64,000 bases of DNA from Macrostomum lignano (lineage: Eukaryota): the NCBI GenBank assembly GCA_002269645.1, contig NIVC01002920.1:19062-83061 (forward strand). Direction: 5' to 3'. Below the pieces are notes generated by a model. It had not been told where the DNA came from. It did not search any database and worked only from the letters and a program-made list of their open reading frames with translations. Positions 25,854-64,000 of this stretch are shown piece after piece. Both the position numbers and the translations under genes were made by a program. Positions within the stretch are counted from its first letter, which is position 1; each line of letters opens with the position of its first letter.

Positions 25854-26352
<499 letters not shown>

Positions 26353-32183: not shown

Positions 32184-33195
32184 TTAAAACATTGGTGGCA
32201 CTGGGGAACTTAAACTTGATCTACGGGATCTACGGCATCCATCGCATTGACAATCCAACTCCGTCCTGAATGCTGTATGTGGTCTAGAAGATCTGGCTGT
32301 TTTGCTGTACTTCTTTTGCGGTGCGTGAAATAATTTTTTGACACCACCGCAAATTCGTGTTGCAGTCCCGATTATGGAGACCAGCTTTGCTTTACAAGCT
32401 TCGATTTCTTTCTTCTGCTCATCGGTTTGAGGCAACCCGAAATCTTGCGACTCCAGCTTCGGCGCTGCAGCAGGAGCAGCTTTCAAGCGGTCTGCGATGG
32501 CTTTGGCTTTTTTTAGCTCACCAGATCGAATGGAGGCTTTCAAGCCGTCTGCCTCAGCTCGACGGGAGGACCCGGCCGCTGCCTGCTCCAGCCTCTGCTC
32601 TGTGGTTCTCAGCAGCTCCTCCAGGCGCTTTTTTTCCACATCGATAAATTCGATAAGACTGCCGATCTGAGCTTTCCAAGGTTGCAGTGTAGCGCTGACT
32701 TTGTCGCATTCCTTCGCGTCTTTCTCCACAGATTTTAACAGGTTGTCGCATTCAGTCTGGCAAGGCAAGCATTCCGTTTTATTAATTTTCGTATTAATAC
32801 CTGCTAAATACTTCAGCTTAAATTACCTTAAACTGAATCCGATGTTCACCAAAGTGCAGATCGCAAACATTCAGGTCGCAGTGACCGCACTTGACAAAGA
32901 CTGAGTTAGGGCACTGTTTTACCCGGCAGGTGGCGCCGGGCGGCGGTTTTGAGTGGAATTCTTTGACCAGCTTGGCCATGGCGGCGTGCTCCGTCGGTGT
33001 AGAAAGCGTCTCTCGGCACACCGGACACTTTGCGGGTCCGAAAAGGGACGTCTCCAAATGGCGTTTGTGGCATTTGCGGCACAGAGTGTGGTGGTTCGGG
33101 CACACGAAGCACGGATCAGTAAAGATTTTCATGCACACCGGGCACTTCAGGTCTTCGTCGTCTCTTGAGCTCATATCTAAAACTTCAGGGGTCAT
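32184..33195 (-). CDS. TRIM-like gene E: RING + B-box + helical region (about 313 aa)
   Basis: complement(join(32184..32756,32827..33195)) = 942 nt, 70-bp intron in the same position as in C, D and F. Confidence 0.8.
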
Positions 33196-36100
33196 CTGTT
33201 AACTAAGTATTTTAAAATCCATGTTAACATTCTAGAATATGCTAAGCTACTATGTAGAAACGGAAAAAGACATAGATTATGACTATTATTGAGCGGTCCG
33301 AAGGCGAGTCCAGTTCCTAAAGAAGGACCGAGCCAGTTGACAGAAACCCTGGAGACACAAATTATCTCGTATCTAAGCTAGGTGCCACACATTACATGCT
33401 GACATGTTACATAAAATATTCTTTGATATGAGCTGTCCTTGACTTCGTCGTCAAGCAACCAAGTGATGATACCTGCCGAACAGTAACATGATTGGTCAAA
33501 AAACAGTGGGGTCAGTAGTAGTAGAGGTGAGTCTGTTGTAGACGAAAGTTGCGAAAGGCTTTGAGTTCTGGGGTTGATGTCTGTTCGAAGCAAACTTGCA
33601 TGCATAAAAAATAAATTTTGAAGGGAGTTTAAACACAATTAAAACTCCCTTCGTTGATGCAAATGTACATGGAGATCCAGTGATTTCAATGCAATGAATG
33701 GCACCTTGAGCATTTCAAGACATTTTAACTTCATTGCCAAGAGCATAACTGTATTGTCACTTATTGGCAAACAAAACTAAGTAACTGCGGTTGATACAGC
33801 TTGTAGAAATGTTATAGTTACCTTTTGAGAAGTGACGCTGTGTATTTGGGAGCAGCTGGGTTATTTGAGAAAAAACTTTAAAGGCGCAGCAGAAGCTGCG
33901 GTAAATAAAATATTTGAGAAGGCGAAGCAACCTTGTTAAGAATTCCGTTTATGCTTTTTTCATTTCAAGCTACTTTATGCATTTAGAGTTCATGAATGCA
34001 CAGCGGAGACGAGTTGCAGTAGAGAAGTGTGACGAAATTTTTATTTTTGAGGTATTTTTTACACCTGTCTTTTATTCTTATCATTTAGCATTTTCGCTCC
34101 TGAACAAACGATTTTCACCTAACAACCAACCTGTAGCTGCTACATGTACTCCTCGCCTTCTAATCTTTGAGTGCAAATTACAGAGAAGCAATGCTTTTGA
34201 TTGTGCTCATGTTTGGTTTATCTAGTTCTTTTAGCTTATCTCTCCACTTTAGAATGGGCTCTTCTCTAAGCCTTAAGTTAAACGGGAGAGTTACGAGCTA
34301 GTTAATAACCAAGCTGAATTCGTTCGTACATCCGGTCTCTTCGACGTTTTATGCAGGGCCTCTTCTATTCTATCTATCCCTATCCCTATTCTATCTATAC
34401 CCTGGTGTATACAGAAGGTTCGTGGAGTTTAGAGTTTTAGTTTCAAAATCAGTTGAGTGCAAATTGCCTACATACGAGTTGAATAAAAAAAATATGCTTA
34501 AAAAACTCCACTTCTAGTGCTTTGGCTTGTAAATTCAGTTGCAATGCAGATGCAATAAAAGTAATAAAAGAAGCCCTCTTTGGCATTTTACCACCTATAA
34601 CTTCATTTCGAAGAGCAGTGTGACGTTGCTAGTTTAAGTGGTCCCGCAAAAGGGCCGTTGGACTATAGTTTCCCTTGCAATTTCTCATATTAATTTCTCC
34701 AATAGTTTATTTTAACGTTTACTTATAGTAGCGTGCAAATAATCTGTATCAACTGCTAATTCACTGTGTATTTGGTAGGCCTTGCGCTCGTCTGTGAATT
34801 TTGGCACGATCGATTATTTCAAATTCTCTCGCCAGCCAATGAAAACCGCTCGTGCTTCGCACTACCCCCCCCCCTCTGCGCTCCTTTATTAACCCTCGCC
34901 TGGCGGGCTGGGGGCTTCTCTCGTCCCTGTTTTTGTGTTCGCGTTCTCGTGCCTCTCTCCTCACTGCCTTGTGTGTTTTCTGCCTTGTGTTTTCCGTCTG
35001 GTTTGTCCAGCCTTGTCTAGCCTTGTTTTCCTTCTCTCTGTCTGGCTGCCTCGAGCCTCCTTATCTCACGCCACGGCTGACGCCAACCTCGCCACTGCTA
35101 CTCACCGCCTCCACTGAGCTCATTGCCATTGCTCATCACGTTACGTCGCCATTGCATCATTCGTCTGTCACTTGACTTCATATCCAATTTATCTTCAAAA
35201 ACCATTGTTGCAGCCGCCAGTGCCCAGAAAGCTATAGTTTGTGTATTGACAGTAATAACCAAGCCTAATATTGATACTACCAATAAAAACAACTACGGAA
35301 GTTCCGGCTTTTATCGCCAAGTGCTCCGCTACAAAATCCGCTTTACAAGAGTTGACTTCAACTTATTTTGGGACTACGACTCACTACAACACTCGTCAAA
35401 ACGGCCCTTTTAAGGGTCATAGCCATAGTTAGCCGCTACGCCAACATAGTGACAAGCAGTATTGTCACTAAATTCGCAGATCAAATTAAATAATTTTGAT
35501 TAATGAAGCTCGTAGGAGTTTCTTAACAATCTTTGAGAAGTAACGCTGTAGGCCAGTGATACACTTATTCCTGCGGCCCAAGTTGGTGCTGAGAGCAGAT
35601 GGGTTAAATAGCTAGATACTTCTAATGGGAAGCAGAGGCTGAGGTAATTAAAATTCTTGAGAAGGCGGTGCAACCGTGCTGTTGTCGTTTCAGTTATTTT
35701 ATGCATTCAGAGTACATGTGTTTACAGTGTGGAGACGAGTTGCAGCAGTGAAGGGTGACGAAATTTATGTTTTAACTGTGAGCTACTTTGTTTTACATCT
35801 GTCTTTTATTCTCACCGTTTAGCAGTTTAGCTTTGAAAAGACGATTTTACCTTACAACCTCTAGCTGAATGTATAGCTGAATGTATTTTTCCTTTTTATA
35901 TTTTAGTACAATTTCATGGCAGAGATGCTTTTGGTTCTGCTTGCGTTTAGGTTAGCCAGTTCTCTTAGCTAATGTCTTCATGTCACGGTCGGGTCTTATC
36001 TGAACCTTAAGTTGAACAAGGGATTCAATTAATAAACGAGCTGCATCCGTCTGTACGCCTGATCAAACTCTTTGTCCTTGAATGCCGGCCCCTCTTGTCT

Positions 36101-37360: not shown

Positions 37361-38274
37361 CTATATTTCATACATAGCCGCTGCATATATCGTATCATCT
37401 TCAAAATCATCACGACAGCTCACACCTCCGCAAATTCCTGTAGCGGTCCCGATTAAAATATCCAGATTTGCTTTACAAGCTTCTATTTCTTTTCTCTGCT
37501 CATCGGTTGGAGGCCACCCGAAATCTTGCGAGTCCAGCTCCGGTGCAGTGGCAGCAACTTTCAGTTGATCTGCGATGGCTTTGGCTTGCTGCAGTTGGCC
37601 AGATCGAAGGGAGGCTCGCAGGTCGTCTGCCTCAGCTCGGCGGGAGGACCCGGCCGCTGCCTGCTCCAGCCTCTGCTCTGTGGCTCTTAGCAGCTCTTTG
37701 AGGCGCTCTTTTTCTATATCGATAAATTCGATAAGACTTTTGATCTGAGCTTTCCAAGGCTGCAATTTAGCGCTGACTTGGTCACATTCCTTTGCATATT
37801 TCTCCACAGATTTTAACAGGTTCTCGCATTCAGTCTGGGGAGAGAATAGTTTCATTTCATTAATTTTCGTGTCAATACCTCCTGTACTTCAGCACAAATT
37901 ACCTGAAACTTCAATCGATGATCGCAGAAGTGCAGATCGCAAAAATCCAGGTCGCAGTGACCGCATTTGACAAAGACTGAGTTGGAGCACCGGGATTTGC
38001 CTTCAAACACCTGGCAGGTGGCACCGGGCGGCGGTTTCGACTTGAAATCCTGGACGAGCTTGGCCCTGATGGCATCCTGCTTAGGTTTGGAAAGCATCTC
38101 TCGGCACTCCGGACACTTTGCGGGTCCAAAAAGGGACATGTCCGAAATGCGTTTGTAGCATTCGCGGCACAGCGTGTGGTGATTTGGGCACACGAAACAC
38201 GGATCAGTAAAGATGTATTTGCACACTGGGCACAGCAGGTCTTCGTCGTCAGGTCGCTTTTGAGCTTCCATCAT
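37361..38274 (-). CDS. TRIM-like gene F: RING + B-box + helical region (about 281 aa; 5' end unresolved)
   Basis: complement(join(37361..37834,37903..38274)) = 846 nt, 68-bp intron. An extra upstream exon near 38.4-38.5 kb is possible. Confidence 0.8.
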
Positions 38275-41200
38275 GGACGAATAGCCAAGGGAGCTCACAG
38301 TTTCCAATAATAATTGGTGCAATTGCACTTTTTAGCTGTGCGACGATTACACTGTTAAGAAAAAAAATTTTGAGCTGACTTGTTTTATACCTTACTGTTT
38401 TCGTAATCAAAAATGACGTGCGAAATGTTTCGTTACATATGAAAACCAGGCCAACCTTTAGTCTGTCAGCCATGCAACTCAGTTTTCTAAAGACTGCTTG
38501 AAGTCATATAAGAAAGGACGCTAAACAAAGTACATTTTATGAAACCAACCAAAGTATTTTGATGCGAGCTATTAAAACCCCTTGATAATCTTTATTTTAG
38601 GACATTTTTCGAATCGCAGATAAGCTCTATCACTCTTCAATCCAGAAAAATTCTATAATTAGGACTTTGATTTTTTATTTGTTTCAGAAAAGTAAATAAG
38701 AAAATTCTCAGTTTATAAAAAATGCAGCAGTAAGCATAATGCAAAATTAGCTATGACAAAATGCCTATTCTTGTCTACACTAAATTTGACGCAGTGTAGC
38801 AAACTTTTGAAAATTTTTGCCTTTAGCAACTATTTTTTCAATAGATCCGCGTTAGTAGTATGTTTTGCTTTAAACTGCTTTTTTATCTAAGTTCAGTTGA
38901 TGAGGACGCACTTTTTTCCAAATTTCACGCTCGCACATGGGTTCAAAACTTGCTAGCCTACTAACAGCATGCTATGGGCGTTTTTTTTCTTTTTCTTTTG
39001 TATTTTTTCTAGAATTCATCCTAGTAGGACTTCTGTAGCTATATTAATTTGCCATACTTGTAGTTATGATAACATAGGCGCGGTTTTTTGCTGCTTTTGG
39101 GTCATAAATCATTGCTTTTGAGCTGGTCTGACAGCCACCTGCGCCTCACTCAGTGCTGGGGCTGGCGCCAGATGATCTGAGAGGATGCGAATGGTAGCTT
39201 TTTTCTCATCATTTTGACAGTCCATCAAGATTTATGAGGTTAGGGCCTATTTTTCGTGTTCACTCAAGCGTGTGACAGCTATGCGTTTTACCCATAAAAG
39301 TACGTTGGGATTAGCGATTAGCGATTTATCTTCATTATCTTCACTTTCTACTTAATAAGAGCTTTCTAATGTATATTTTTTCATTAGTTTTTTTTCGATT
39401 CTACGCGGAAAGTCATAAATCATTTTGTTGCGATTTTTATTGATTTATGGCCGCATCTGTCATATATTTACGACCCCGAGGGAACTGATAGGATCTCTTG
39501 GTCACGTGACTTTGGGTGGCAACAAGCTCAGCCGATCAGAAAATTCGACGTGCGTTGTAACAAATCGGCTCAGCCAATCAGAATGGAGGTGTTCCATTAT
39601 AACTAATTGCGGTCCAGTTGGCGGCTTTGGCCGGCGTTTTTGGCCGGCGCGGACCTCAACTGGCTCGGAACTTCCTGCTACTTGCTCGGGCCCAGTACAC
39701 GACCGTCGTTTCTTGATCCCCGGATTGCGACTTCCCCCATCATCATCAAGGACGAGTCCCCCTGGTCGTCAGCAGTAAACATCAAAGTTAAGAGCATCAC
39801 CTGCTAGCTATCAGCGAGGATTGGGACATCAGCATCATCCCGGGTCTACAGCTGCGAAGCACTAAGCCGATTCGGTCGCTGTGGATTACCTGGTCTCCGC
39901 CTGTTGAGTTTCTGATTGGTTGGGTGAGAGGCTACCTAGACTTGCTTGATTTGGTGATTCCTTATCTGTCCCCTATTTCAGTAGCTGGATTAGGCGCACA
40001 CTTTTGCTCATTTTATTTAGTAGTGCTGTTACTGAGGCAGAAATCATTCAATAATACTGATAGTAGTCTGAGACTCCAATTCAATCTGAAGTGTGAGAAG
40101 ATCTAAGGAGAAGGAAGGAGAAGGAGAATCCGACAGTTATTTTTATCGGTTTTATTTCTTTGTTCGCCGATGGCTCAGATGAGTAGCTAAGCTAGTAGGC
40201 GCCGGTCACAGTGGACCAATGGCAAGGCAGTTCTCAATCGATCAATCTATCAAATCAGTGAGCAAAACTGCCAGAAGTGCAGAATCGGCGCCAGAGATGT
40301 ACTTTGTGCACTCTAGGTTCGCCAAGCGGCTCGGGTAATGAATCATGCGGTCCCTGAAGTTGGAGTTGGCCTATCATCAGGGCTATGAGAGGCTGGTTGG
40401 CGCGTTGAAGGCCAAAAGTACAATTCTTTGTATTTAGCAATGTAATAGTACATGTAGCTACCCCATAGTCTCGCCATTGCAAGAATCCCCTGCACAAGTC
40501 CCCTCTGTACCTGCATGGCCAATGCGATCTAGTCCCAGCAGTGTCCCTTAACATCGGCTATGACTTCGAGATTGACAGCAAAAAGACACTAGTTGGCAGG
40601 TAAGTGCAAAGCCCCCTCTAATCGGAAGCCCGATTTCGAGAGTCCCGGTGTGGTGAGCCAGGACGCACGGGCTGGTGGCAGCGAGTTAGCTTAGTCTGCG
40701 GATTAGCTAATTTCTACCTTCAAAATTCTCACTGCTTGTCTCTCGCTGTCCCTCTCTTAGCTATAGGACCTAGACTGCTCGCCACACGATCAAGCTACCA
40801 TGGGGCTGACCATCTGACAGGAGTGGGGGGCCAGGACTCTAATTTATTTATTTCTGAGACCTAAGGCCCGAAGGCTTCCCCACAAGGGAGCTGAAAGGCC
40901 GAAACCCATCACAGCTAAAAATGTCCAAAAACGATTTTATCGAAATGATTAAACCTAATTTTCGGTTAAAACCTAATTGTTCAAGTGAAACAGTGCTGTG
41001 CACGAGTTCATGGGCATGAAACTTTAACTTAACTTCTGCTAGTGTAATAATCTAGGGATTTCAGATATGGACTTATCAGGGACTTAGAATAATACGAGAA
41101 TAAGGGTTTATGTTAAAACGTATCTAGACAAAAAATTCATTGAACTCATAACTCGCTATTGTCATTAACTTTTCTTAGCTCAAGTGTCCCTTTTCGGGGT

Positions 41201-42414: not shown

Positions 42415-45265
42415 TCAGGGTACAAAGCGACGCAGAATCTGCCTGAACGGCTCCTCAGGATGGCCTCTACCAGCGGCCGAGAACCTTCCAGTCAGTCGAA
42501 GGACGCCGCTAGGCGTGAGTATCGTCGAGTCGCCGTGCACCGCCTCTAGAAACGGTCGCTCCATCTCGTGTCCCAACTCTGTCGCTTTTAGATCGAATTC
42601 CTGACCGGATTTTACCGGCGGAGACACCTTCGGCGTCTTAGTCAACGAATTCAAGTTGTGAAGTCCTCGACGATTCAGTCTGTTGAAGGCGACACTGGCC
42701 ACTTTTAAGTCGCCAGTGTCCAGAGCTTCGCGCAACTCGACAGCATCGGCAGCCGCGGAAGTTGATAGGGCAGCTCCGCGCGAGGAATCCGCCATCTCGG
42801 CGGCCATAGCGGAGAGCGCATCAAATCGCTGCCGCTGATGCTCCAGGGCATCGCGACAGTCGGCAAAGAGGCGACTCCACTGCTGCAGAGCCGACTGGCG
42901 CTGCTTGGCTGACTGGTTTGCCGACTCTGCCGCTCTAATTAAAGTGCTGGACTCCTCCTGAAAGAAAATTTGACAAGTTGACATGTAGAACATGAACACT
43001 AATTGCAGCAATATCCGTTGTAAACCGTTGCTTTGTTAAAATTTGAGCGAAAAATGTTAGTTTTAGTTTTGGAACTTTAGTTTTATGTAATAATAATTAA
43101 TTACCTCGTGCACCTGCCCAAATAGGCAGATGTGCAACCGACAGCTCAGCCGCAGCTATTGCGCGGCGCATCTGAAGGCTGCGTACGGCTGTTCAGTCCA
43201 AGGACTGGGGGGGGGGGGGGGTCGCCACACGCACCCTCAATTACCCCAGCTAATGCTGGCACCCATTTTACAGCTGGGTGAACTGAAGCAATGCAGAGTT
43301 AAGTGCCTTGCTCAACGACACAAATTGTTCCGAGTGGGTTGAGAATCGAATCGAGGATCGACCTTTCAGTCGTGAGTTTCGACGCTGTAACCATTAGGCT
43401 ACAACCCCTTTGTTGCAGTTTATTAATATTTGTTGTTACTTTGGTAAAACAATAGGAATCGGAAATCCTATTATAGTTTAGAATTTATAGCTTTGCATAC
43501 GAGTATAAGTAGCAAACTACGAGCATAAGGTATAAATACGGTATTCCACCCAAATAATTTTTATTGTCAAAGCTGTCAATCAGTTATAATTGTGTTCCCC
43601 GTGTAAAGTCAACAGATCATCAAGTACTCCTAAAAAGATATGTAAAGTCAGCTTAATGAAAGCCAATCTTAGATTCATGAAAGGTCTAGAAATGGAGGAT
43701 CAAGGCTGAAAGCATTGCAGCAAACCTGGGAGAAATCCGAATGACCATATTTTTTAAGGATTCAAAATGGTCTAGCGCTTATTAAGGTATTCAATCGCTG
43801 TTTATTAAAAAAGTGTTTGTTATGCTACTGATTGAGGGAAATACCAATGAAAGAAAACATACGGCTATTGATACGGATCGAACTGCTACAAACCGATGAC
43901 TACTTCTACCGATTGATCTGTTACAAACCAATGACTACTTCTACCGATTGATCTGTTACAAACCAATGACTACTTCTACCGATTGATCTGCTACAAACCA
44001 ATGACTACTTCTAGCGATTGATCTGCTACAAACCGATGACTAATTCTACCGATTGATCTGCTACAAACCAATGACTACTTCTAGCGATTGATCTGCTACA
44101 AACCGATGACTAATTCTACCGATTGATCTGCTACAAACCGATGCCTACGTCTACCGATTGATCTGCTACAAACCAATGACTACTTCTAGCGATTGATCTG
44201 CTACAAACCGATGACTAATTCTACCGATTGATCTGCTACAAAACAATGACTACTTCTACCGATTGATCTGCTACAAACCGATGACTACTTCTACCGATTG
44301 ATCTGCTACAAACCGATGACTACTTCTACCGATTGATCTGCTACAAAACAATGACTACTTCTACCGATTGATCTGCTACAAACCGATGACTACTTCTACC
44401 GATTGATCTGCTACAAACCGATGACTACTTCTACCGATTGATCTGCTACAAAACAATGACTACTTCTACCGATTGATCTGCTACAAATCAATGACTACTT
44501 TTATCGATTGATCTGCTACAAACCGATGCCTACATCTACCGATCGAGGACTACTAAATTTAAACAACTATAAAAGATTGAACGACCGTACAGCAATCATG
44601 CGCTTTCGTTAAACTAACTCTGAACGTTTTAACTTACGAAGTTACGATTATAACCCACCTTAAATCGCATCTGATCGTTAGCGTAATGCATCTCGCACAG
44701 GTTCCGATCGCAGTGCTCGCACCTGGCAAATACCTGCTGCAGACAGGCACAGTTACCGGCACCCTCTCGAGCGTCGCATTTCGCGTGATGAAGCCACTGC
44801 TCCCGCCGACGCCAGCTGTCTACCACGCCGCGGACGTGAGGATTCTCCAGCGGACGATCGACCAGACGCTCGCGACAAATCGGACAGCGGGCCACCTCGC
44901 CAGACGAGTGACATTTGGTTGCGATAGCCTGGTGACAGCCGCGGCACAGAGTGTGATGACGGCTGCACACGAAGCACGGATCAACGAAGGTGCTCAAGCA
45001 CACTGGGCATTTCAGCTCCTCTTCGAGATCTTTGACTGCCGGAATCGAAACGTATTTTTGCATTTAAATAGACAGTTTCAAAACTTGGGCACTTTGCTCA
45101 GGTTTGTTGCGTTTTAAGATTGATTCAATTTGATTATAGTCGACCGTAATACCGAAAGACTTAATTGTTACAATGTCATAGGTTTGAATTTTTACAACAA
45201 ACAACTTTACAATGCAGAAACAACAACTGAGATAACTTACAGGTTCCACTTTCTGCAGACATCAT
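42415..45265 (-). CDS. TRIM-like gene G: RING + B-box + helical region (about 314 aa)
   Basis: complement(join(42415..42957,44659..45035,45241..45265)) = 945 nt in frame; the 1.7 kb intron holds a SINE and a 35-bp minisatellite. Confidence 0.8.
43090..43405 (-). mobile_element. tRNA-derived CORE-like SINE, copy 3 (intronic in gene G)
   Basis: Minus-strand A box tagcctaatgg, B-box-like gattcgattc, core cccattttacagctgggtgaactgaagcaatgcagagttaagtgccttgctcaa. Confidence 0.8.
43880..44545. repeat. 35-bp minisatellite (CTGCTACAAACCGATGACTACTTCTACCGATTGAT)n
   Basis: About 19 head-to-tail units inside intron 2 of gene G. Confidence 0.96.
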
Positions 45266-46360: not shown

Positions 46361-47732
46361 TAACGGGTGTCCCAAAAAAAGGTAACACTTTGTGCGCTCA
46401 CTGTGAGTGAGCAGATAGGCCTATAGCACAGTAATTTAACAGGTCCACAGTAAATATTTGTAAGTTTTTCCCACAAACATTTGGTTGCGAACAATTGCTC
46501 CAGAGGCGAGTTATTGAGCACAGAAGTGTACGCTAGCTTTTCTGCCAAGCTTTGCCATACACAGCTGCCATAGACAATCTTTTGCTTTAAAAAATCTTAA
46601 GGAGCATAGACTCTGAGACGGTGTGCGGTCAAATACCAGTTTATTTGAAAAATCGTTATTGATTTTTTGAGCTTGTAAGTGTACGCTAGCTTCTCTGCTA
46701 AGCTTTGCCATAGACGGAGGCCATAGACAATCTTTTGCGTAAGAAAAATGACAGAGCCAAGGACGACTTAAGTAGAAGGACGGGAAACCTCGTTTCTTAG
46801 AAAATTTTTGAAGGCACTTTTTCCCGAAAAAATACACTGCGGAGATAGGAAATTTTCATTTTTTCAGCACAAAAATTGCTATAACTTTTGATAGGAGGCA
46901 GATCCAGTGTTGATCTTTTGATATGTTGTGCCTTTTTTATTGCTCTATCGATATTTATAAAGCTTTCCGTTCAGAAAATTAGGATTCTATGTTAATTTTT
47001 TATTCTACGTATATTTCCTGTATCTAAAAATCACAAAAATGCATGACACAGCTCTAATATTTGGTTTTATGAATCTATTTTATCATCTATGTTACGACTA
47101 TTTGCTATACAGTCAGGTAAGAAGGATAAAATAGACTCATAAAATCAAAGAGCCAAGCCGTGGCATTCTAATGTATTTCAAGCACAAGACACATGAAAAT
47201 ATACGTAGAATAAAAAATTAACATAGAATCCTAATTTTCTGAACGGAAAGCTTTATAAATATCGATAGAGCAATAAAAAAGGCACAACATATCAAAAGAT
47301 CAACACTGGATCTGCCTCCTATCAAAAGTTATAGCAATTTTTGTGCTGAAAAAATGAAAATTTCCTATCTCCGCAGTGTATTTTTTCGGGAAAAAGTGCC
47401 TTCAAAAATTTTCTAAGAAACGAGGTTTCCCGTCCTTCTACTTAAGTCGTCCTTGGACAGAGCATGCCTAGACTCTGAGACTGATCTAACGTTAAAATTT
47501 TTAAAGCAAAAGATTGTCTATGGCAGCTGTGTATGGCAAAGCTTGGCAGAAAAGCTAGCGTACACTTCTGTGCTCAATAACTCGCCTCTGGAGCAATTTT
47601 TCGCAACCAAATGTTTGTGGGAAAAACTTACAAATGTTTACTGTAGACCTGTTAAATTACTGTGCTATAGGCCTAACTGCTCACTCACAGTGAGCGCACA
47701 AAGTGTTACCTTTTTTTGGGACACCCGGTTAT
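46361..47732. mobile_element. Foldback / long-TIR non-autonomous DNA transposon (Tc1/mariner-like termini)
   Basis: Outer arms about 46361-46598 and 47485-47732; near-perfect inner arms about 46757-47014 and 47198-47455; further arms about 47065-47085 and 47126-47146. Ends read TA-acgggtgtccc ... gggacacccggt-TA. Confidence 0.85.
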
Positions 47733-47857: not shown

Positions 47858-50008
<2,151 letters not shown>

Positions 50009-50884
50009 TTTTCAGTAAGAATTCTAATTGCAAAATTCATACAATGCGAAGAATCCGAGAAATAAAACTTAGAGGTAGAGCTTGCATGGTTCCTAGTTCT
50101 AAAGCGCGTTTAATGTAAAAAATCAGATTGTAAGTGCAATGTCTATTTATAGAGTAGCCAGTGCGTACGCTTCTAGTGTACAAAAGAACAGAATTCCAAC
50201 GTACTTCTCGGCGTACAGTACGTACTCGTACAATGGGTATAGGTACAGCGTACGTTAGTCAGTGCATACTATTTCTCTTGTTCTTTCCCACGCAGCAATT
50301 TCAAATAAATATCCGTAAAACCAACTGCTGTCTTTCGCTTGGACACAACAACCTTTATAATTATAACCTACCATTCGATCTACAAAATGAACGATTTTGG
50401 TTCAGGTAAGGTTGAAAGCAAGTTAATCCCCAAATTTAAGTAAAACAGGCCTGCTTTGAAGCTTTTTAAAATTTTTTATGGAATTTCGATTCAAATTGAA
50501 ACAATACGCACGCCCGTTCTTGCATAGTTCTAATTAGGAGAGTAGCGGATCTGGAATTAGTTTGAGGGTTCATCAACGCAAATTGGCCTGTCCAAAGCTG
50601 TCTTGCGATTCCCATGGCTTATGACGGCCAACCAAGTCTCAAGGCACAGGGTAAAGTTCAGGGATGCCCGACGATGGGAATAGCGGCGTTTTTGCGTCAT
50701 TTATGTGTTTAGGGTTTTTTCCATTGGATCAAGCAAGATTAGCAGTTTAAATATTGAGGGGTTCATTGACACTATAGCAAAATGACAAAATAAAAAAGTG
50801 CATTTTGGTAATTTTTGTAGACTGTACTTGGTTTTGGTTGATTTTTTATACATGAGCCCAAAACCCAAAGCCTGGCCCTCTGCA

Positions 50885-52931
50885 ATGAGCAAATCATCTC
50901 AAGGTTTCAATGTTGTTCCTATATTTTATACTTCTGATTTGCAGAGGTTGCTGAGGAGCTGCTATGCCCCGTGTGCTTGGATCCCTACAACGACCCCGTA
51001 TATGTGTGCATCCATCACCATAGCCTGTGCCGCGAATGCTACCAAATGATTGTTTCGACAGCTGGCAGTGACATCCCGCAGTGTCCGCAGTGCCGAGAGA
51101 AATTGACCAGACCCGTTGATAATACTCAACTGCGCCGTCTGGTGGAGGCTCACCAACAGCAATCTCAGCAGGCGGTCCAATGCCAGGACTCTTCCTCTGG
51201 CGGCATCTGTGCTCGGCGTAGTGCTGAGCGATGCGGGCACTGCGAGCAGAGCTTCTGCGCGCAGCACTTCATCGCTCATAAAGAGCAGTTTCAAGTGCGT
51301 ATGAAATTCACTGTTTCTTTATTGTTTTTTAAGGTTCTCGCTCTGAAGATTAATTTTTAGGTTCTTAAATGCGATCACTGATTTCAGACCGATTGCGTTG
51401 AGCTTTTGTCGGCTGCAGATGAAGCAGCTCAGCAGTCAGAGATTCGACAAAGAGTGCTAACCGAATGGGAAGTCTTTATTCAAAGCTGTGTAGCGCATCT
51501 GATTGAGAATTCGAGACTGCAGCGATTAATTCCCGAATCCTGGCTCGACGATGCATCCCGGAGGCACGCCGAAGATTTACGAAGCACCCTCAACGCCGGT
51601 GACCTGCGGGCAGCCAGAGTTGCCTATGATGAACTCAGGATGGCCAAAGCGAGATTCGACCAGCAAGGACCGCCTCGCGAGATCGTTGGAGAGCTCAGCC
51701 GAGATGCGTTGTTCTCTCTGTTTCAAGAGAAGCTTTCAGCCCTGCTGAACGAAGCTGAACAGGTGTACCTTGACGGCATCTACGGCTTGGTCGAACGCGT
51801 TTGCCACATTGGAATTTCCACAGTCAAGCTGAAGATTGGGAAAGAGATACAGAAAATTCCGGAGCTCAAATGCCGGCTTAGTTTCGTCCTGCCCGGTCGA
51901 GGCAGTCACTTCACTCCCTATGTTGACCTCAAAGCCATTCGTGCCGAGCAATTTGAAAGGGACATTCTGATTCGTTTCGATTTCCAGCAGCAGTTCGACT
52001 ACAGCACCATCAGTATGTCGAACGGTCTGGCCATTTTGGCGCAGTTTCTGCAGAGAGGACCGATTGAACTGCCGTTCTGTCTTCAGATGAAGTTTAAGGA
52101 GAGGCTGGCCTCCGGGGTGGCTGAAAATACCTACTGCAGCAGAATGTATCAACTCGCAGCTTTGCTGCCACTGGCGGAGGCGATCAGTCGTGGGGAGAGC
52201 ATCGAAAACGTGGAGTGTCCTTGTGAGCTTCTGAATAATGTACACTTTAAATTACCTTTGTCTACTGAGTCATGACCCTGTTAATTAAACTACAAAAGCT
52301 TTTAGTGTAAAATGCACCAAAAACTCGCGAAACTAACTTTTCTGGTTTCTTAGAAAATATTTGGATTCTGGGCTTGCGCAAAAAATGCAATGCTGTCATG
52401 CTGAAATAGGAAATAGCTTCTCTTCAACACAAATGATAATAATATTAGTTTTTGTAGAAGCAGATTGATAGTAAACTTTTCTGCTGGTTAGATCAGAGGT
52501 ATTTGGAAAGAGTACTTAATTGTTCAAAATCAATAGTTTTTTGCTTTATGAACTAATTAGATAGAAATTGACTTTTACAACTGTAATGCGCATACAAAAT
52601 CAAGGATTTACAGAAGTTGCCCTGTCTGTCTAATGAGTGTCTGACTGGTGGAAATTAACGTTGAAAACGTGAGCTCCTAGCTCGACCGTAAAGACCAGCT
52701 GACGCAGTGCAATTAGCCAGTCGTCGTTGAGCCAGCTCCGGCTTCTTCTGAGATTGAATCTCCAAGAACCAGCCTTAATTGGTCTTTCCCGCAGTGCTGG
52801 ATGAAAATGAGGCACCTCGCGGATGTGTCACGGTGTCCACCAACCTGCCGTGTCTGCTGAACCAAGTCTACCGGGAGCTGCCGGCTGAGGAGCAAAGCGA
52901 AGTTGAATTGAGGCTTCGAGGAGAAGAGTAA
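50885..52931 (+). CDS. TRIM-like gene I: RING + B-box + helical region + C-terminal RID/RPGRIP1_C-like C2 domain (about 446 aa)
   Basis: join(50885..50903,50945..51294,51388..52222,52795..52931) = 1341 nt in frame. The last exon, missing from the ORF track, reads LDENEAPRGCVTVSTNLPCLLNQVYREL and matches the RID small exon GSIKISTDLPSLLLEIGREL. The first exon is less certain (41-bp intron). Confidence 0.82.
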
Positions 52932-54128: not shown

Positions 54129-57100
54129 TCACTGCATTCCATACTCACTTTTAACGTGATGAAGCAGCCGTGGCAGGCTGGTTTCAATCGCGATGCTGCC
54201 AATCTTCTTCTCGTTTTGAATGACTGAAATGAAAACGTTGATTGAATCTGGGGTGATTAACAGTAAAATACATTTTTTCTTTGTTGGATTGTGTTTTAAA
54301 TGGTGTTTTAGAAATCGAACAAACTCGGAGAAGAAGTATAGCTCGTAGATCTATTTTTACCGTTACAGAAAATATAAAAACTGACACTCTGCGGAACCTT
54401 TGTGAGAATTCTATTCATCGGTTGATTTTTTATAATTCGGCTAAAGTAACTTGGTCACTCATTTAGTTGTCAATATATGATCCACTACACAAAACTTTAA
54501 TGCCTTATAAAAGACCCACGAAACATTTCAAACGTCTGTAGACCCCACGTCGATGTACGTCGCAGGCAATTGGGTATTTTGACGTTAAGCCGAAGGACAA
54601 TGACATCATGCGTAGGTCAGAATTCGATGTAATGTATTAAATGTATCAAATCTGCCCCCCAACATAGATGGACGTCGAAAACGTCTGCTGACCTAAATGA
54701 CTTCAAATTGCAGACGGGAGAGAGAAATCTCTAAATCTCACGTGGAAACTCGTTCCAGATGCAGCGGTCCTGTTCGATACTGGGTTGCAGGCCGACACTG
54801 GCCTCGCACAAGTCGCCGGCTGCCTCAGAAGCCAGCGTGAATCGAAGCTCGACTGGATCAGCCAGTAGCAAGCTGGTTAGCTGCTTCCTCATTCCTTCTT
54901 CTGAGTAATCGAAGCGCCATATATAGTCGAAGTTTAGGCGATAATCTCCAGGCTGAGACCACCCGGGTCTGGGGATGAGCACGCTGGGCGTGTGCGTATC
55001 CTCAGAGTCGGAATAGCCAGGTAGATTGAAGTAAACATAGCAGTTGTTAAGTTTGGGATTTTTCAAGGCCTCACTGTTCTCCATTAGATGCACAGTTGAT
55101 ATGGCGATGTCGCAGTGCCTCGAAACACTTTTCACTGTGAATGGTTTTTGTGTTTATGCTTTTTCTAGAATTTGAAGCGTTTACAAGCGTTAAAAGTCGA
55201 AAATACTTACTCCTATAATTCAGATGACTTCTGATGCTGATAGGTACAAATCTAAGTAGAGATTTTGGTAGCTCACGGCCGATCTCCAGTAGCAAGCTGG
55301 GCAAATCCGTGCTGATTTTGATGCTGCCCACCTGCTCGGTCCTCGCCATTACTAAAAGTTTTTGATAAAATTCATTACAAAATCCGAAATTCATATTTAC
55401 CGTATACGCTTAACCAAGAAAAAAGCAAGTTTACACGCACCAGGAAATCTCTCGTCTCTAACATCTACATGTACTTCACGTCTTAAGTAATCATCGAGTT
55501 TTATGATAGTCCTTCCCAATTCAGTCTTAACGAAAGAGCTTGCCAAGTTTGGTGATTTGCAAAATACTTTGAACGCGATCTGCAGGTTTCCCTCGAGAAT
55601 CGACTTGGCCAGCATCAGGCGGTTTTGGTAGTTGCCTGTCATGCTGTAGTCGTAAGTCTTTTCAAAATTGAAAGCAAGAAGGAACCCGTTTTTCGGAGAT
55701 TGCACCGAATTCAGGACTGGTCTCAAAAGAGACGTCATTGTTTCTTGAAGCTTGAAGCCGACTAGGTCAAATGCTACGTAGCACTTTCCCTTGCCAAGCT
55801 GTGAATTTGTCAAGACTTCAGATGAGCCGTTCAGTTGCACGTCAGCTATTCGCACAGTGCAGTTCTCAACGAAGGCTTCATCGATTTGCGAATAGGCTGA
55901 TTATTACCTGTAATCGAAAGGTACATGTCTGTCGTATCTATGGGAATGCATAGTTGTAAATATGAAGCCTCATTTATTTAATAGTTAAAAATACAAGGAT
56001 AGTTCGACATTGTCTCACCCTCGGCTTCATTTTCCTCAGCAGTAGGTTTTTGGACGTCCTCAAACGAGTCTAACCGTTTCCTGATCGAAATTAGCAGACT
56101 CGGCAGGCTCATGCTGATTTTGATGCTGCCAACTTTATTACCGTTTGACAGTACTAAAGTTACAAAGCGATACATTTTAATGCGACAACAATTCGGACAC
56201 TATCAGCATGTGATGCTAAAAGCCATCTAGCTTTTTACCAGACAGTATACATTTTTTTAAACTCTTGAAACTTGACTGAAACCTGCATTGCTTGCATACG
56301 AGTACTAAGAACTCATATTAATATACGACCAATGCCATCATATCACACTGGGACTACTGAAATAAAGGGTAAACCACCGTTGGACTAACAGGGAAAGCCA
56401 CCCACTGTCTATCTACCGATCTAAAAAAACTCACGTGGAAAGCTTTGTTTTCGAATATCCTCGCCTCGAGCAACAAACTCGTCCATTTTGACAGTCGCCT
56501 TGCCAAGATCCATGTAGAATTCACTCTCTGAGTCGGACGGCTCGCAAGCTACCACGAACGGAATCTCGATGCACTTTCGTCTTAAAAGCAGCATAGTTAA
56601 TATTTTTCTCTTGCTTGCGCTGCTGTAGTCGTAGACTCCTTGGAAATTGTAGCTGAGGCAGAACTCCTCAGGTCGCGACCGGCCCGGCCTGGGCGTCGGC
56701 ACAGATCCGGGCGTTTCCGTCTCCTCGCTTCGGAAACCGGGTAGCGAGAAGAGCACGGAGCACTTGGTGTTGTCGAGTTCTGGCTTCCTCAAAACATCGC
56801 TTGTTTCACTGAGCTCCACATTGAATATCTGGACTTTACAGCTTTCCATAGTGAATGAAACTAAACCTAGTAGCTTTTTTAAGTCGTTCTAATTCTGTCT
56901 GGCATCATTTAAATAGCAAGTTCGCAAACTGCAACTTCAGCTGAACTTTGGAATCTAAGAGGGAAGGTGAAGTTCTTAGGTAAAAATTGTCCACCTTAAT
57001 GAACTCCCACTTTCTCTGAGTAATTTGGGCTCTGGAATAATATTAGCAAAAAATGAAGTCAGAGATCTTCTACGTGCTGCAAAAGCCAATCTTCCTTTGT

Positions 57101-59444
57101 GCGAAAGAGAGTTAGAAATTGTCAGAAAAGTGGATGCGCTGCACACATCTTTGAGTACGTCATTGTGCATAATAAAATGGCAGCACTAAAATTAGCAGCT
57201 TACCCAAATGAAGTTCGCTTGATATTTTCTATTTATCTACCAAAATATAAAAATAAAAACGCTGAAACAATATCTAATTCATAATATAATCAGAATATAA
57301 TTCTGAATTAGAAATAAAAACAAAAATTGCAAACTTATTCACTAAGAATCTACGATACACACACCGTAAAACATAACAAACGAGATTCTCTATAGATGTA
57401 CATGTTAGTACAGAAAATTTAATTTAGAAATAACCTGATGCATCAGTTACACAACCAATGAGCATATGCTTACATGTAAAGTTGAGCAAAATGTTAGTAG
57501 CATGTACAGCTGATTCTAACGAGCGCACTGGTTTGATTATAGCTCTCATAACTTTTTTAGCAGAATTTCAAACCACTTGGGCACTTTGAAATTGATAAGC
57601 TTTCTAGCTCTTTAAAAAAGTTATTGACTTTTTTTTACCCTCTGGTATTTCATCGCAGATTTCCCGCAGCAGACTGGGCAAGTTGGTGCTAATCGTGATG
57701 CTGCCAACAACTTCATCTCCGTTCAGTACTGAAATAATAAAAAACGGCGTGTCTGGTGAACGACGCGTCTACTCGACATGTCCACTCAAAGCCCATTCTA
57801 CTGAATTTTAAGCACGCACAAACATGAAAACAATCATAAACTCATCAACTCAATCATGAAATTATCAACTCAATCATGATATCATCAACTCAATCATGAT
57901 ATCATCAACTCAATTATGAATCATCAACTCAATTATGAGATCATCAACTCAATTATGAATCATCAATGTAATCATGAGATCATCAACGCAATCAATAAAT
58001 CATCAACTCAATCCATAAAATCAACAACTCATTTTTGAAATATTCAACTCAATCATGAGATCATCAACGCAATCGTGAAATCATCAGCTCAATCAATGAA
58101 TCATCGACTCGATCATGAACTCCTGAACTCATGAATTTGATTATCATCAAAAGCGTGGATCATTCAAAATTAAGACCACAAAAGAACATCAAAAGTTAGC
58201 TAGGATAAAAAATCAAAGCGAATAAACTAATTAATTAACATGTCTTGAAAAAACCTACACGGAAAGCTCTCGTCTTGAATGTCCTTGCCATCAGACACAC
58301 GATCTTCGAGCTTGACGACCGCAGTGCCAAAATCCAAGAAGAACTCGCTGTCCTGATCCTCCGCCTCGCACACCAAGGTGAACGGAAGCTTAACTGGACT
58401 CGCCATTAACAGAGTGGCAAGCTGGATCCGCTTATTGTAATTTGTATCGTAGCTGTAGTCAAATCTCTTCTGGAAGTTAAACCTAAGATGGAAATCTTTT
58501 GCCTTGGTCCAGCCTGGTCTTGGCGTTGGTAGCGAGAGAGAAGTCTCCGTTTCGTCCATATCAAAACCAGGTAGATCAAAGGACACAAAGCTGTTGGTGT
58601 TGTCGAGCTCGGGATTCTGTAGAGCTCGGCAAGATTGCTCTAGCTGGACACTCGATATACAAACTGTACACATCTCGCGCGAGTCTGCTTTAGAAGTCGA
58701 CTGAGTCTTCCGACTGAGTGCTGAAGTTTGTTTCAGGTTTCAAACTCTTATTGAGAGTGTCTTTACGAGAAAATGACGAATAAATACAGAGTAAAATGGC
58801 AACAATAAAGCTTAAATTCTCACAGTCTTTAATATGATCATCGGCAGCTGGATTCGTTTCTATGCAAACGGCGAGCAGTAAGCTGGGCATACTTGTGCTC
58901 AGCTTTATCGTGCCAACTTGCTCTTTGTAGTAGGAAAGCACTAAAATATAAAACATCCGATTGATAGTAGTTAAGGAACTGATTTCAATTGATTACCTAC
59001 CGGTATTTTAAAAATATAACATTCTCAACCCGCACCAGGAAAGCTTTCCTTTTGGACGTCGTCCTTTCGAGCAATTCTATTATCGAGTCTGACAACGGCT
59101 CGGCCCAGATTAACTTCACTTTGCGATTCGTCCGGTAGGCAAATCAGGGTAAAATTGACATCAGCATGATACCGGCTGAGCATGTCATCCAGAGCCTGTC
59201 GCTTGCCTCTGCTGGAATAGTCGTATGAACTTTCGTAATCGAATTTCAGGACCAGATCCTGGCGTGTGGACGCTCCTGGTTTTCGGGTCGGCAGGATGGC
59301 GGGGGTCCTGGTGGCCTCCAGCTTATAGCTTGGCAGATCGAAAAGCACGTAGAACTTCGAACTTCTCAGATTCAATCCTGCCAAATCAGGGCAAGTCTGG
59401 TCGAGCCGGACGCTGAATATTTTCACCACGCAGCTTGATTCCAT
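54129..59444 (-). CDS. Protein of five tandem RID/RPGRIP1_C-like C2 domains (about 885 aa), stand-alone or a 3' extension of RPGRIP1L
   Basis: complement(join(54129..54223,54742..55134,55277..55351,55441..55896,56019..56153,56435..56860,57639..57728,58259..58720,58824..58940,59036..59444)) = 2658 nt, no stops, nine phase-1 GT-AG introns. Each domain is a large exon ending F-P-x plus a small (V/I)GSI.IS..LPSLL exon. A further 3' exon is possible (donor at 54148). Confidence 0.78.
57836..58130. repeat. Degenerate minisatellite of about 20 bp (ATCATCAACTCAATCATGAT)
   Basis: About 14 imperfect units inside an intron of the five-RID gene. Confidence 0.88.
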
Positions 59445-61485: not shown

Positions 61486-64000
61486 TTAGTTAACGAATCT
61501 GACGGCAGACTTTTTCGCGTCCGGGAGTTCGTTGTAGACCTCCAGTAGCAGGCTCGGCAGGTTCATGCTGATTTTGATGCTGCCCACTTGTTCATCGTTC
61601 AGCATTACTAAAATTGTTAGAAGACACATGGCATGATTAATGTGAGGTTTGGATTAGTCAAACTTTTTTATTTACCAAATATTGAAAAAAATATAATTAC
61701 ATATTACTACTAATGATAATAATTGATTAAACCTGCCCAAAGGGTATTACGTGGCGCATCTGAAGGCTGCGTACGGCTGTTCAGTCCAAGGACTGGGGGT
61801 CGCCAGATAGCCTCAATTACCCCAGCTAATGCTGGCACCCATTTTACAGCTGGGTGAACTGAAGCAATGCAGAGTTAAGTGTCTTGCTCAACGACACAAA
61901 TTGTTCTGAGAGGGTCCAAAATCAAACAACCGACCTTTCAGTCGCTTGTCCAACGCTCTGTAACCACTAAGGCTACAACAAGTATTTGTGAAAGTGTATT
62001 TCAAATAATCCTACTCGAGTTTTCACCCGAGTCAACTGGAACTCACGAGGAAAGATCTCTTCTCGAATGTCCTCGCCTTGAGCGATTCGATCGTCCAAAT
62101 TGACCATCGTTTTGCCCAGATCCACGAAAAATTCGCTCTCTGGATCAGACGGCTCGCACACCACAGTAAACGGGATCTCAATACTCTTCTGTCCCAATAG
62201 CAGCATCGCCAGTACTTTGCGCTTCTCGTAGCTGCCGGCGAAACTGTAGTCGTAGACTCTCTGAAAGTTGTAACTGAGGCAGAACTCATTGGTCGGGACT
62301 GGCCGGGCCTGGGCGTCCAGAGAGACACTGGCGTCTCCGTCTCCTCCTGCGAGAAGCCAGGCAAGAGGAAGAACACGTAGCACTTGGTGTCATCGAGGTC
62401 GGGATTTCTTAAGCCTGGCAGGTCTCGCTAAATTGCACGTTGAATATCTGGACTGTGCAGGCTTCCATTGAAGCACGACCAGTAGCTGTCAGCATCAGCT
62501 GCTGGCGGAGCTCGTCCCCGTGGCTACTCTCCGTCACCACGCCATCGATTCCTCCGCCTCCGGTGCCGGACGCTCTGTGTCCTCGTAGTCGTCCTCATAC
62601 TCAACCTCCTCCACTTCGTCTTCCGGTTCCGCCTCGGCAACGTCGTAATCGTCGTCTCGCAGACTGACGGACTGCAGATGCGAAGCGACGCCGCTTCTAC
62701 CAACGCTTGGACCTGAAGAATTCGTGGAGTTTAGAATTCGCTTGGAGCTTGGAACTATTGGTTTAGTCTTTATCTTCTGCAACCTGCTTATTCGTTTTTA
62801 GACAAGCCCTGGGTCAGGGTCATTGACAATGCCGAAACTCACCTAACGATGTATTTCTCACGTCCTGCGTATCCGTGATGCTAGTTACGCTGTCGGTGAC
62901 GGATGCTAAAGTGATGAAACCAGTTAGGAAAATTTTAGCAGCCTTGTTTTAGCCAGAAATAGTACTAACAGTAGGTTGATTAAACATGCATAGGCCTACC
63001 ATCCATGAGGGTGCTGACCCGAGTCTGGCTCGCCTGCGTATCGCCAGCGCCACCGCTGCGCCGATGCCAAAGCCGACGCTCTGCGCGGCAGCGGCTAAAG
63101 CAGCGGCCGACGGGCGTGCCGTTTCGGCGGTTGCGGCGTCTGAGACACCTGCGGCTGAATTTGGAGTTGGGATTCAAAATATACAGCTAGCTAAAAATAA
63201 ACTTCAGTAAATTTTATTATCTTATCAACACTACCAACCTGATTGTCCCCAGTCAGAGATCCCGACCGACTGCCAGTTCGTGCACTCGGTCGTGGCGACG
63301 ACGATCCCGACGCTGAATTCGGTGCTACAGCCGACGCTGTTGGCGATGGACCATGGCTGCTTCCGCTGGCACTTCCTGGGTGCCTCGGCGCGGGGTTCTC
63401 GGCTGCTGAACTGGCTGTGGCTGCGGCTGCTGGGGCTGAGTCGCTGCTGCGTGCTTCTCGCTGATCCGGTGTCGGATCCCAAGGCCACCGCCGCGCTGCG
63501 ATCAAGAGTAGAGTCATACCCAGGTTCCCGACGGCTTCAACTGCGGCTTGTCTCTCAGCAGTTCAGCTTCGCCAGTCATCAGTGGCAGAGGCTCGGCAGG
63601 TCCGTCCCAATGACCAGCTGGATTGTACGCAAACTGCCAGCTGAGCTCAAGCTCCAGAGTGCCGTTCGGCTGCTGATCAGCTCCGAGTAGTTGGTAGATG
63701 CCCTGCACAGCCCGGTTCTGGCTTAAGGACACTAGATCGATCTACATGGGGATACGAGTAGATAGGGGATTAGTAATGGGTAAATCGGTAAGAATAAGAA
63801 TCTTTTGGGTCTTGAATATCGAGAAATATGAAAAGTTCAGCCATGGCTGTTAAAACGTGTCTAAATCCTTATTGAAAACAATGAATGACATCCAAGTCAC
63901 CTTAGCAACGCCTAGGTAGGCGCCTTTCAAGAGGATCGTCTTCGTCCAGCACCCAGACGACGAGCTTCTGCGTCTTCAAATAGCGATCCAACTCTGGGGT
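61486..64000 (-). CDS. RPGRIP1L: 3' part of RPGRIP1L/MKS5-like gene (end of second C2 domain, low-complexity/acidic linker, RID); partial, several frameshifts
   Basis: ELDRYLKTQKLVVWVLDEDD..YLGVAK|IDLVSLSQNRAVQGIYQL....PNGTLELELSWQFAY matches the RPGRIP1L C2 end as recalled (DLDRYLKSESL..VFDD, ISGIFEL, GTIHVILKWKFAY). The RID carries ETETPVSL and FTVVCEP. Exons: 63901..>64000, 63520..63741, unresolved 62990-63500, about 62047..62780, 61486..61607. Confidence 0.8.
61705..61978 (-). mobile_element. tRNA-derived CORE-like SINE, copy 4 (last intron of the RPGRIP1L-like gene)
   Basis: Same body as 43090-43405; head tgtagccttagtggttacagagcg on the minus strand. Confidence 0.78.

Follow-up and report, generated by a model that had tools for sequence, protein, structure and literature searches.

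TRIM/RBCC ubiquitin ligases are organised as a RING, a B-box zinc finger, an extended coiled-coil region and one C-terminal partner-binding domain. To our knowledge, the published classes of this C-terminal domain are PRY-SPRY, COS-FN3, NHL, filamin, PHD-bromo, MATH, ARF and TM. The RID of RPGRIP1 and RPGRIP1L mediates protein-protein contacts independently of calcium and lipids, with the RCC1-like domain of RPGR as a ligand (PMC4519163). In RPGRIP1L, the proteasome subunit PSMD2 is a further ligand of the RID, which increases the activity of the proteasome at the base of the cilium (PMC4494006), and NEK4 and myosin Va are reported interactors of the C-terminal C2 domains of RPGRIP1L (PMC10006689). 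Here, we describe a gene of Macrostomum lignano, referred to as gene I, in which the two architectures meet. The gene is located in the last 64 kb of contig NIVC01002920.1 (83,061 bp; assembly Mlig_3_7), hereafter called the window, so that base 64000 of the window is the end of the contig. Its product follows the TRIM domain order and contains none of the C-terminal classes listed above; a RID is found instead.

Structure, domains and constraint of gene I

Gene I is located on the forward strand and consists of four exons that keep 446 codons open up to a TAA stop at positions 52929-52931. A first exon of 19 nt is followed by exons at 50945-51294, 51388-52222 and 52795-52931, and all exon borders are of the GT-AG type. 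Exon 2 encodes a C3HC4 RING (50965-51093), a linker helix and a B-box-like zinc module (51181-51279). The first part of exon 3 (51388-51783, residues 124-255) encodes a helical or coiled-coil region, to which the second part (51784-52222, residues 256-401), a C2-type RID, is joined within the exon. The last strands and the tail of the RID (..GCVTVSTNLPCLLNQVYRELPAEEQSEV..) are encoded by exon 4 (52795-52931), a mini-exon with the product ...GCVTVSTNLPCLLNQVYREL.... The intervening intron (52223-52794) is in phase 1, with a donor one base past the C-P codons (TGT CCT T/GTGAGC, the slash marking the exon border), and its site is common to all eight RID copies in the window. The locus is present three times in the assembly in copies that are 95-98% identical to each other, namely the window copy and two others (L001 and L002).

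The predicted product has the same length as UniProt entry A0A1I8GNY8, to which it is 99% identical with differences at residues 2-6 alone. Both this entry and the RNA-seq-derived models PAA67346.1 and PAA87951.1, which are encoded on two other contigs, start with MNDFGS and thus use a first exon at 50387-50405 (M-N-D-F-G-S, 19 nt, phase 1, ATGAACGATTTTGGTTCAG/GTAAGG, with the donor GTAAGG); the three share this exon and the exon starting at 52795. The initial annotation had proposed exons 2 to 4, including the phase-1 intron and the last exon, exactly as they are given by splicing and by the public models, and had placed the start of the gene at 50885. The alternative first exon at that position (50885-50903; M-S-K-S-S-Q, likewise 19 nt and phase 1, with an open frame and a weak donor GTTTCA in ATG..CAAG/GTTTCA) is used by none of the three public models, and the true start probably lies 498 bp further 5'. 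Neither of the two candidate exons differs in L001 or L002, where the splice sites of intron 3 are also conserved, and the exon at 50885 might at most provide an alternative start. GenBank models of this assembly are open reading frames (ORFs) taken from RNA-seq-derived transcript assemblies (PMC5730564), and hence a transcript model does contain the exon at 52795; its absence from all transcripts had been named as a result that would refute the chimera. In the public records the protein is labelled "RING-type domain-containing" or "hypothetical" and nothing more, and no Pfam match is recorded for it.

The N-terminal half of the protein is TRIM-like and carries a TRIM-type RING, as judged from profile matches and a predicted structure. 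RING-type models were the only matches in a Pfam scan (zf-C3HC4, PF00097, 21.9 bits on exon 2; cut-off 21 bits), which gave no PRY, SPRY, NHL, filamin, MATH, FN3, PHD or bromo domain and neither the C2-C2_1 nor the central C2 domain of canonical RPGRIP1L-type proteins. All eight zinc ligands of the RING are present (C14, C17, C28, H31, with H30-H32 available, C35, C38, C53 and C56). These ligands are invariant in nine of nine paralogous genes in the window, as is an Arg/Lys after the last RING Cys, the "linchpin" position for E2~ubiquitin in RING ligases. Seven further Cys/His residues at the B-box position (C86, C95, C103, H105, C106, C111 and H114), which make up a second zinc module, are likewise invariant in all paralogues. 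The best matches among PDB sequences were the RINGs of TRIM21 (E 3.6e-9), TRIM72 and TRIM25. Exon 2 was also modelled separately with AlphaFold 2 (AF2) on the nine paralogous exons, which yielded a mean predicted local distance difference test score (pLDDT) of 87. Using Foldseek, this model was aligned to the TRIM21 RING with a template modelling (TM) score of 0.82 and a root-mean-square deviation of 1.4 A; it also superposes on the TRIM25 RING, and was aligned to the TRIM21 RING-B-box structure 5olm across 107 columns with a TM score of 0.45. The gene had been described as a RING-B-box-RID chimera, of which the RING and the RID stand; the Pfam zf-B_box model was not reached and the second zinc module is therefore termed B-box-like.

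To place the protein among other sequences, we searched 1.84 billion representative proteins exhaustively with HMMER, using A0A1I8GNY8 as the query, and examined the best 150 of 186 matches. Among these, the nearest relatives outside Macrostomum were frog "TRIM25-like" and multi-RING proteins, and a phmmer alignment with frog TRIM25-like proteins covered residues 7-340. Three frog proteins of 1500-2200 residues (P0008, P0009 and P0012), all "uncharacterized", contain the module repeated several times, with three separate matches in P0008; these could be either tandem TRIM genes that have been merged or genuine multi-RING proteins. The helical region encoded by exon 3 is homologous to the exon-3 helical regions of the seven paralogues located between the two ends of the gene array (genes B to H, below).

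The C-terminal 190 residues of gene I are, by profile comparison and predicted fold, homologous to the RID modules encoded next door. A profile built from the six neighbouring RID units alone detected gene I with 63.4 bits (E 1.5e-19), and comparison of the gene I RID with these units using hhalign gave 98.9% (E 2.4e-17) over 168 columns. Single units were matched in BLASTP searches at E values of about 1e-9 and 26-35% identity. A six-frame profile scan of the window identified large RID exons and mini-exons, exactly eight of each kind, none of which is near genes B to H. In all eight copies the donor is located one base past the F-P codons (C-P in gene I and F-K in gene A), and the phase-1 intron is followed by a mini-exon of the pattern G-S-I-K-I-S-T-x-L-P-S-L-L. 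The gene I mini-exon is one of these eight homologous mini-exons (42.6 bits), and its tail resembles that of unit 6 (VYNELPDAKKSAV), the RID unit farthest from gene I. A search of PDB with the eight-member profile yielded a single, full-length match, the human RPGRIP1 RID (4QAM_B, E 1.2e-9). In the AF2 model, residues 260-446 form a type II C2 beta-sandwich with eight main strands at pLDDT 70-87. The top PDB match of this model in Foldseek was again 4qam_B (E 5.8e-5, TM score 0.57), followed by a C2 domain of KIAA1005, which we take to be RPGRIP1L, and then by other C2 domains. The proposed relationship between the C2 domain of gene I and the adjacent RPGRIP1L-type RID is thus borne out by hidden Markov models, hhalign, the shared intron and mini-exon, and the fold.

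The RID of gene I keeps the core motifs FDYS, LPF and STNLP and carries a loop with about 10 extra residues (AENTYCSRMYQ). The sequence EETETPVSL of unit 6, which is identical to that of human RPGRIP1, is replaced by GSHFTPYVDL in gene I and by NDSPKVELS in gene A; the ETETPVSL motif is near-intact in units u3 and u4 and partly replaced in units 1, 2 and 5. Alignment with unit 6 and human RPGRIP1 accordingly upholds the suggestion that the motif has been lost from both gene I and gene A; the proposal built on it, that these RIDs may have ceased to bind RPGR, is a possibility only.

To quantify the constraint on gene I, we compared the window copy with the other two copies, between which gene I does not differ. 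The exons differ at 14 sites, half of them synonymous and half non-synonymous. The frequency of synonymous differences per site (pS) is 0.023, similar to an intron divergence of 0.021, and that of non-synonymous differences (pN) is 0.0068, giving a pN/pS ratio of 0.29 (one-sided binomial P=0.023). There are no indels in the exons versus eight indel columns in the introns. In the RID part, 4 synonymous and 3 non-synonymous differences were observed on about 3.4 times more non-synonymous sites. The signal of purifying constraint across the whole protein, RID included, is modest but consistent in these comparisons, and the gene looks functional. The fusion had been described as "old and functional"; a transcript model, three intact copies and the pN/pS ratio argue for the latter, while its age is not established by the trees presented below.

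The RID array, the RING paralogues and the origin of the fusion

Gene I ends at 52931 and converges on a RID array, as had been proposed, the nearest unit of which ends on the reverse strand at about 54129-54132. Six ORFs at 54.7-62.6 kb match the Pfam family PF18111 (RPGR1_C), and four of them, u2, u3, u4 and unit 6, score above the gathering threshold of 22.9 bits (24.5-39.6 bits). Modules u1 to u5 (54132-59444, reverse strand) each consist of a large exon and a mini-exon, located at 55120-54742 and 54223-54132 (u1), 55867-55441 and 55351-55277 (u2), 56849-56435 and 56153-56019 (u3), 58673-58259 and 57728-57639 (u4), and 59444-59036 and 58940-58824 (u5). Every module of the array is bordered by phase-1 introns. 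Unit 6 (61489-62468, reverse strand; PF18111, 39.6 bits) is the terminal RID of an RPGRIP1L-like gene that runs off the contig end at 64000; it contains ETETPVSL and ends with a mini-exon at 61607-61489 followed by a stop. At the corresponding position in L001, the gene encodes 1290 residues with C2-C2_1, C2 and RPGR1_C domains, and by this domain content the neighbouring gene is an RPGRIP1L orthologue. The large exon of unit 6 (62290-62412) reads in three frames because a single nucleotide appears to be missing from each of two short homopolymers (GCTTAAG near 62412 and CGACCAATGAG near 62290) in an otherwise well conserved exon. These breaks represent either assembly errors or a pseudogenised copy; the L001 counterpart has a Pfam RPGR1_C match.

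Modules u1 to u5 had been taken for a single five-RID gene. Transcript-based models join u5 and u4 only, into products of 370 residues in GenBank and 325-331 residues in UniProt, and thus do not support a single ORF spanning all five RIDs. At 57607-59444 (reverse strand), the GenBank model keeps the u5 mini-exon, which is skipped in the UniProt models (acceptor at 58720), and both types read through the donor of the u4 mini-exon to a stop at 57607. Units 1 to 3 (54132-56849, reverse strand) are covered by none of the public models retrieved; their frames are intact, with no stops and only in-frame 6-nt indels in three copies, and they could belong to a second RID-only gene with its ATG at 56849. 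The modules u1 to u5 are all intact in the three genomic copies, and the gap-free units show ratios of synonymous to non-synonymous differences of 17:7 (versus L001) and 15:11 (versus L002). The RID-only proteins of M. lignano include A0A1I8GPY1, A0A1I8J8Y7, A0A1I8H1D6 and the 370-residue GenBank model. A word-indexed search with the eight-RID profile retrieved only three proteins, each from M. lignano and with two RIDs; it missed the canonical RPGRIP1L proteins as well as genes A and I, and hence says little about other taxa.

The window contains nine paralogous RING/B-box-like genes in total, and the two at the ends of their array, A and I, are the only ones that carry a RID. Gene A (742-2668, reverse strand; exons 2668-2650, 2547-2144, 1742-986 and 896-742) encodes a RING-B-box-like-helical-RID protein of 444 residues that is 100% identical to the GenBank protein BOX15_Mlig013468g1. 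The four-exon layout that it was said to share with gene I is confirmed, down to the intron phases of 1, 0 and 1. The two genes were also correctly described as very divergent, yet intact: their products are 26% identical over 429 residues (E 1e-36) and both frames are open. The gene A-type RID scored 41 bits against the six-unit profile and 97.3% against the units in hhalign.

The seven RID-less paralogues B to H are arranged in tandem at 15720-49143 on the reverse strand, each with a helical exon downstream of the RING/B-box-like exon (16388-16774, 23944-24405, 29647-30036, 32821-33198, 37855-38331, 44632-45063 and 48721-49143). They are three-exon genes with public models of 295-321 residues that end at the exon-3 stop after the helical region, and no RID relic was detected downstream of any of them in the six-frame profile scan of the window. 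The exon-3 ends of genes G and H (42418-42560 and 47861-48000) encode a linker, (F/Y)L(E/D)(A/G)(V/I)(H/Y)G, in common with gene I, followed by unrelated tails. In gene I this linker leads into the first strand of the RID; in G and H it is perhaps a trace of a lost RID, without a statistically supported relic.

As its exon structure shows, the RID was copied from the adjacent RPGRIP1L/RID array as genomic DNA and fused within an exon to the helical region. Retroposition is not consistent with the retention of the internal intron and the terminal exon in the copy. The 5' junction of the RID is located inside exon 3, unlike the phase-1-bounded modules of the array, which argues against plain intron-phase exon shuffling; on this point the initial view of the locus stands.

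It is less clear whether this occurred once or twice. Genes A and I may have gained their RIDs in two independent captures from an expanding array, rather than in one old fusion with subsequent loss from genes B to H. In hhalign, either RID matches the array units far better (97.3% for A and 98.9% for I) than it matches the other (4.3%, E 0.0096). The distances behind a neighbour-joining (NJ) tree of the RIDs gave the same picture, and the deep nodes of this tree were not resolved. Among the units, the RID of gene I has its closest counterpart in unit 1 (34.7% identity), its physical neighbour in opposite orientation, with which it was grouped in 48% of the bootstrap replicates. In the NJ tree of the N-terminal regions, genes C, D, E and F (99%) and genes G and H (98%) formed clusters, B joined the C-F group in 78% of the replicates, and A and I were placed on deep branches that were not resolved, appearing as sisters in just 26%. 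Long branches alone could however bring the RIDs of A and I each nearer to slowly evolving units. Moreover, both junctions are located in exon 3 at nearly equal depth (128 residues in A and 137 in I), the alignment of the two proteins is collinear through the junction with one 5-residue gap, and the same terminal mini-exon is retained in both genes. We consider two separate captures possible, if rather unlikely. No orthologue of gene A or gene I was found outside M. lignano in the public protein searches, including the best 150 of 186 matches in the exhaustive search, so that the term "old" cannot be calibrated.

The window has several further features. Between genes A and B there are three paralogous single-exon ORFs of 296-303 residues (6708-7598, reverse strand; 8136-9047 and 12688-13599, forward strand) with hydrophobic N-termini that by eye resemble signal peptides, and no Pfam match was obtained for the two that were scanned; a UniProt model (P0002, 806 residues) fuses one such ORF to RING genes. 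A G+C-rich (55%) fragment of a long terminal repeat-type retrotransposon with broken frames is located at 20259-21944 (Integrase_H2C2, 42.7 bits; RT_RNaseH, 27.5 bits). A large palindrome at 46364-47727, between G and H, has inner arms (46757-47016 and 47197-47456) that are 100% complementary and outer arms that are 98% complementary, and is either a foldback element or an artefact of long-read assembly. Long tandem arrays were found at 3642-4301 (9-bp), 5777-6613 (27/36-bp), 25854-26352 ((CTAT)n), 28022-28860 (36-bp), 43872-44543 (35-bp, between the two exons of gene G) and 49151-49889 ((ACTA)n, between H and I); they account for long spurious low-complexity ORFs in the ORF list.

Possible functions of the RING-RID protein

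We think it rather likely that gene I encodes a TRIM-like E3 ubiquitin ligase in which a diverged RPGRIP1/RPGRIP1L RID serves as the partner-binding module. By analogy with TRIM ligases, two copies of the protein would pair through the helical region, and the RING would recruit and activate E2~ubiquitin. The RID would select the partner and dock it for ubiquitination, possibly at the ciliary base; an RCC1-like propeller such as RPGR is one candidate, and a different known ligand of RIDs, for instance the proteasome subunit PSMD2, is another. Given the known RID ligands, the simplest view of a RING-RID protein is that of a ligase directed against such a ligand, plausibly at the ciliary base. 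The loss of ETETPVSL and the identity of about 30% to the array units suggest that the partner may differ from that of RPGRIP1L, and the ligand may be a new one.

Several observations weigh against this interpretation. Neither gene I nor gene A matched PF18111 at E<1 in a direct Pfam scan, and a direct search of PDB sequences with gene I did not retrieve 4QAM, so that the link to canonical RIDs is transitive, via the local units. The AF2 input alignment for gene I included RID units, and the fold match is therefore supporting evidence that is not fully independent of the sequence evidence. In the N-terminal half, no zf-B_box match was obtained in the Pfam scan of gene I, only ANCHR-like_BBOX at 13.6 bits, and the predicted helical region (residues 108-257) has a pLDDT of 40-60, which is explained by the lack of alignment depth supplied there. 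The selection test is based on 14 substitutions only. No expression data on Mlig013276 or Mlig013468 and no biochemical data were found in the full texts and supplements. Finally, the seven paralogues presumably function without a RID, which might thus be dispensable.

The last point leads to the possibility that gene I carries its RID merely as a passenger in decay and that the protein works like B to H, through the RING, the B-box-like module and the helical region alone. The seven intact RID-less paralogues would fit, as would the loss of a motif that is conserved from human to unit 6, a RID score below the Pfam threshold and the fact that 3 of the 7 amino-acid differences between the gene I copies are located in the RID. 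We nevertheless hold decay to be improbable since three copies preserve about 190 RID codons together with both splice sites, synonymous differences outnumber non-synonymous ones in the RID (4 to 3, despite the about 3.4-fold excess of non-synonymous sites), the fold is predicted at pLDDT 70-87 with the core motifs FDYS, LPF and STNLP kept, and the very divergent gene A also retains the same domain intact. If the RID is maintained, the protein could still act mainly as a dimeric decoy or scaffold that competes with RPGRIP1L and the RID-only proteins, with the RING used for dimerisation only. Over-expression of the isolated RID changes ciliary proteasome activity in mouse cells (PMC4494006), and the RID-only proteins encoded at the same locus suggest that RID dosage or competition matters. 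Such a role is very unlikely, in our judgement, because the zinc ligands of the RING and the E2~ubiquitin-activating linchpin Arg/Lys are all invariant in the nine paralogues, and the RING model superposes on the catalytically active RINGs of TRIM21 and TRIM25.

It is barely credible that two separate genes were merged into the chimera by faulty annotation or assembly, or that the chimera is a pseudogene. The assembly is redundant and contains residual errors, such as the two 1-nt deletions in unit 6 and the perfect palindrome at 46.4-47.7 kb, but the fusion point is located within one uninterrupted exon, the same ORF is found on three contigs and in the independent earlier annotation A0A1I8GNY8, and the GenBank models of gene I derive from transcripts. 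In a broader and much more speculative scenario, to which we attach little probability, the RID would have been amplified in Macrostomum into a lineage-specific system of RID-only proteins and two RING-RID ligases that ubiquitinate RID ligands at the base of cilia. It is just as speculative that the ligands of such a system would be RCC1 propellers of the RPGR type, or proteasome or kinase partners.

Comparison with known architectures and implications

The similarity of gene I to TRIM/RBCC ligases extends to the N-terminal C3HC4 RING with its flanking helices and linchpin Arg, for which TRIM21, TRIM25 and TRIM72 are the closest, and to the setting in a tandemly expanded cluster, like that of many TRIM genes. 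The protein differs from TRIMs in that the second zinc module falls below Pfam zf-B_box and in its short length (446 residues). With the RID of RPGRIP1 and RPGRIP1L (PF18111, 4QAM_B) it shares a type II C2-like beta-sandwich at the extreme C-terminus, the intron position and the core motifs; in those proteins the RID is attached to coiled coils and two C2 domains, whereas it is attached to a putative RING ligase in gene I. The RID-only proteins of M. lignano are products of the same lineage-specific RID amplification and have the same module exon structure, but consist of two RIDs only, with no RING, B-box-like or helical region, and have phase-1 introns on both sides of the module rather than a 5' border within an exon. 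As an analogy only, TRIM37 is a TRIM whose unusual C-terminal beta-sandwich (MATH) is reported to target proteins of the centrosome or the cilium base (PMC12724674); the C-terminal domains of TRIM37 and gene I, MATH versus C2/RID, are not homologous.

Among the best 150 of the 186 matches, the combination of RING and RID was seen only in A0A1I8GNY8 (gene I) and in P0004, a gene A-type copy, both from M. lignano, and text searches of the literature found no report of a RING or TRIM fused to RID/PF18111. Gene I would be a TRIM-like ligase with a new receptor domain, made by local domain capture, which overturns nothing. Standard annotation pipelines at present miss the RID of gene I. For specialists in protein evolution and cilia, the gene offers a clean and in principle datable case of a new E3 specificity, in which the module of a neighbour was welded within an exon onto a TRIM-like chassis. 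If the RID is the receptor domain, the C-terminal repertoire of TRIMs is wider than listed, and C2/RID would be a new class of TRIM substrate receptor. Since the ligands of RIDs are poorly defined outside vertebrates, a RID-bearing ligase would be a natural tool that marks them by ubiquitination and, if this is true, would open a direct way to study the control that RID interactions exert on turnover in the transition zone.

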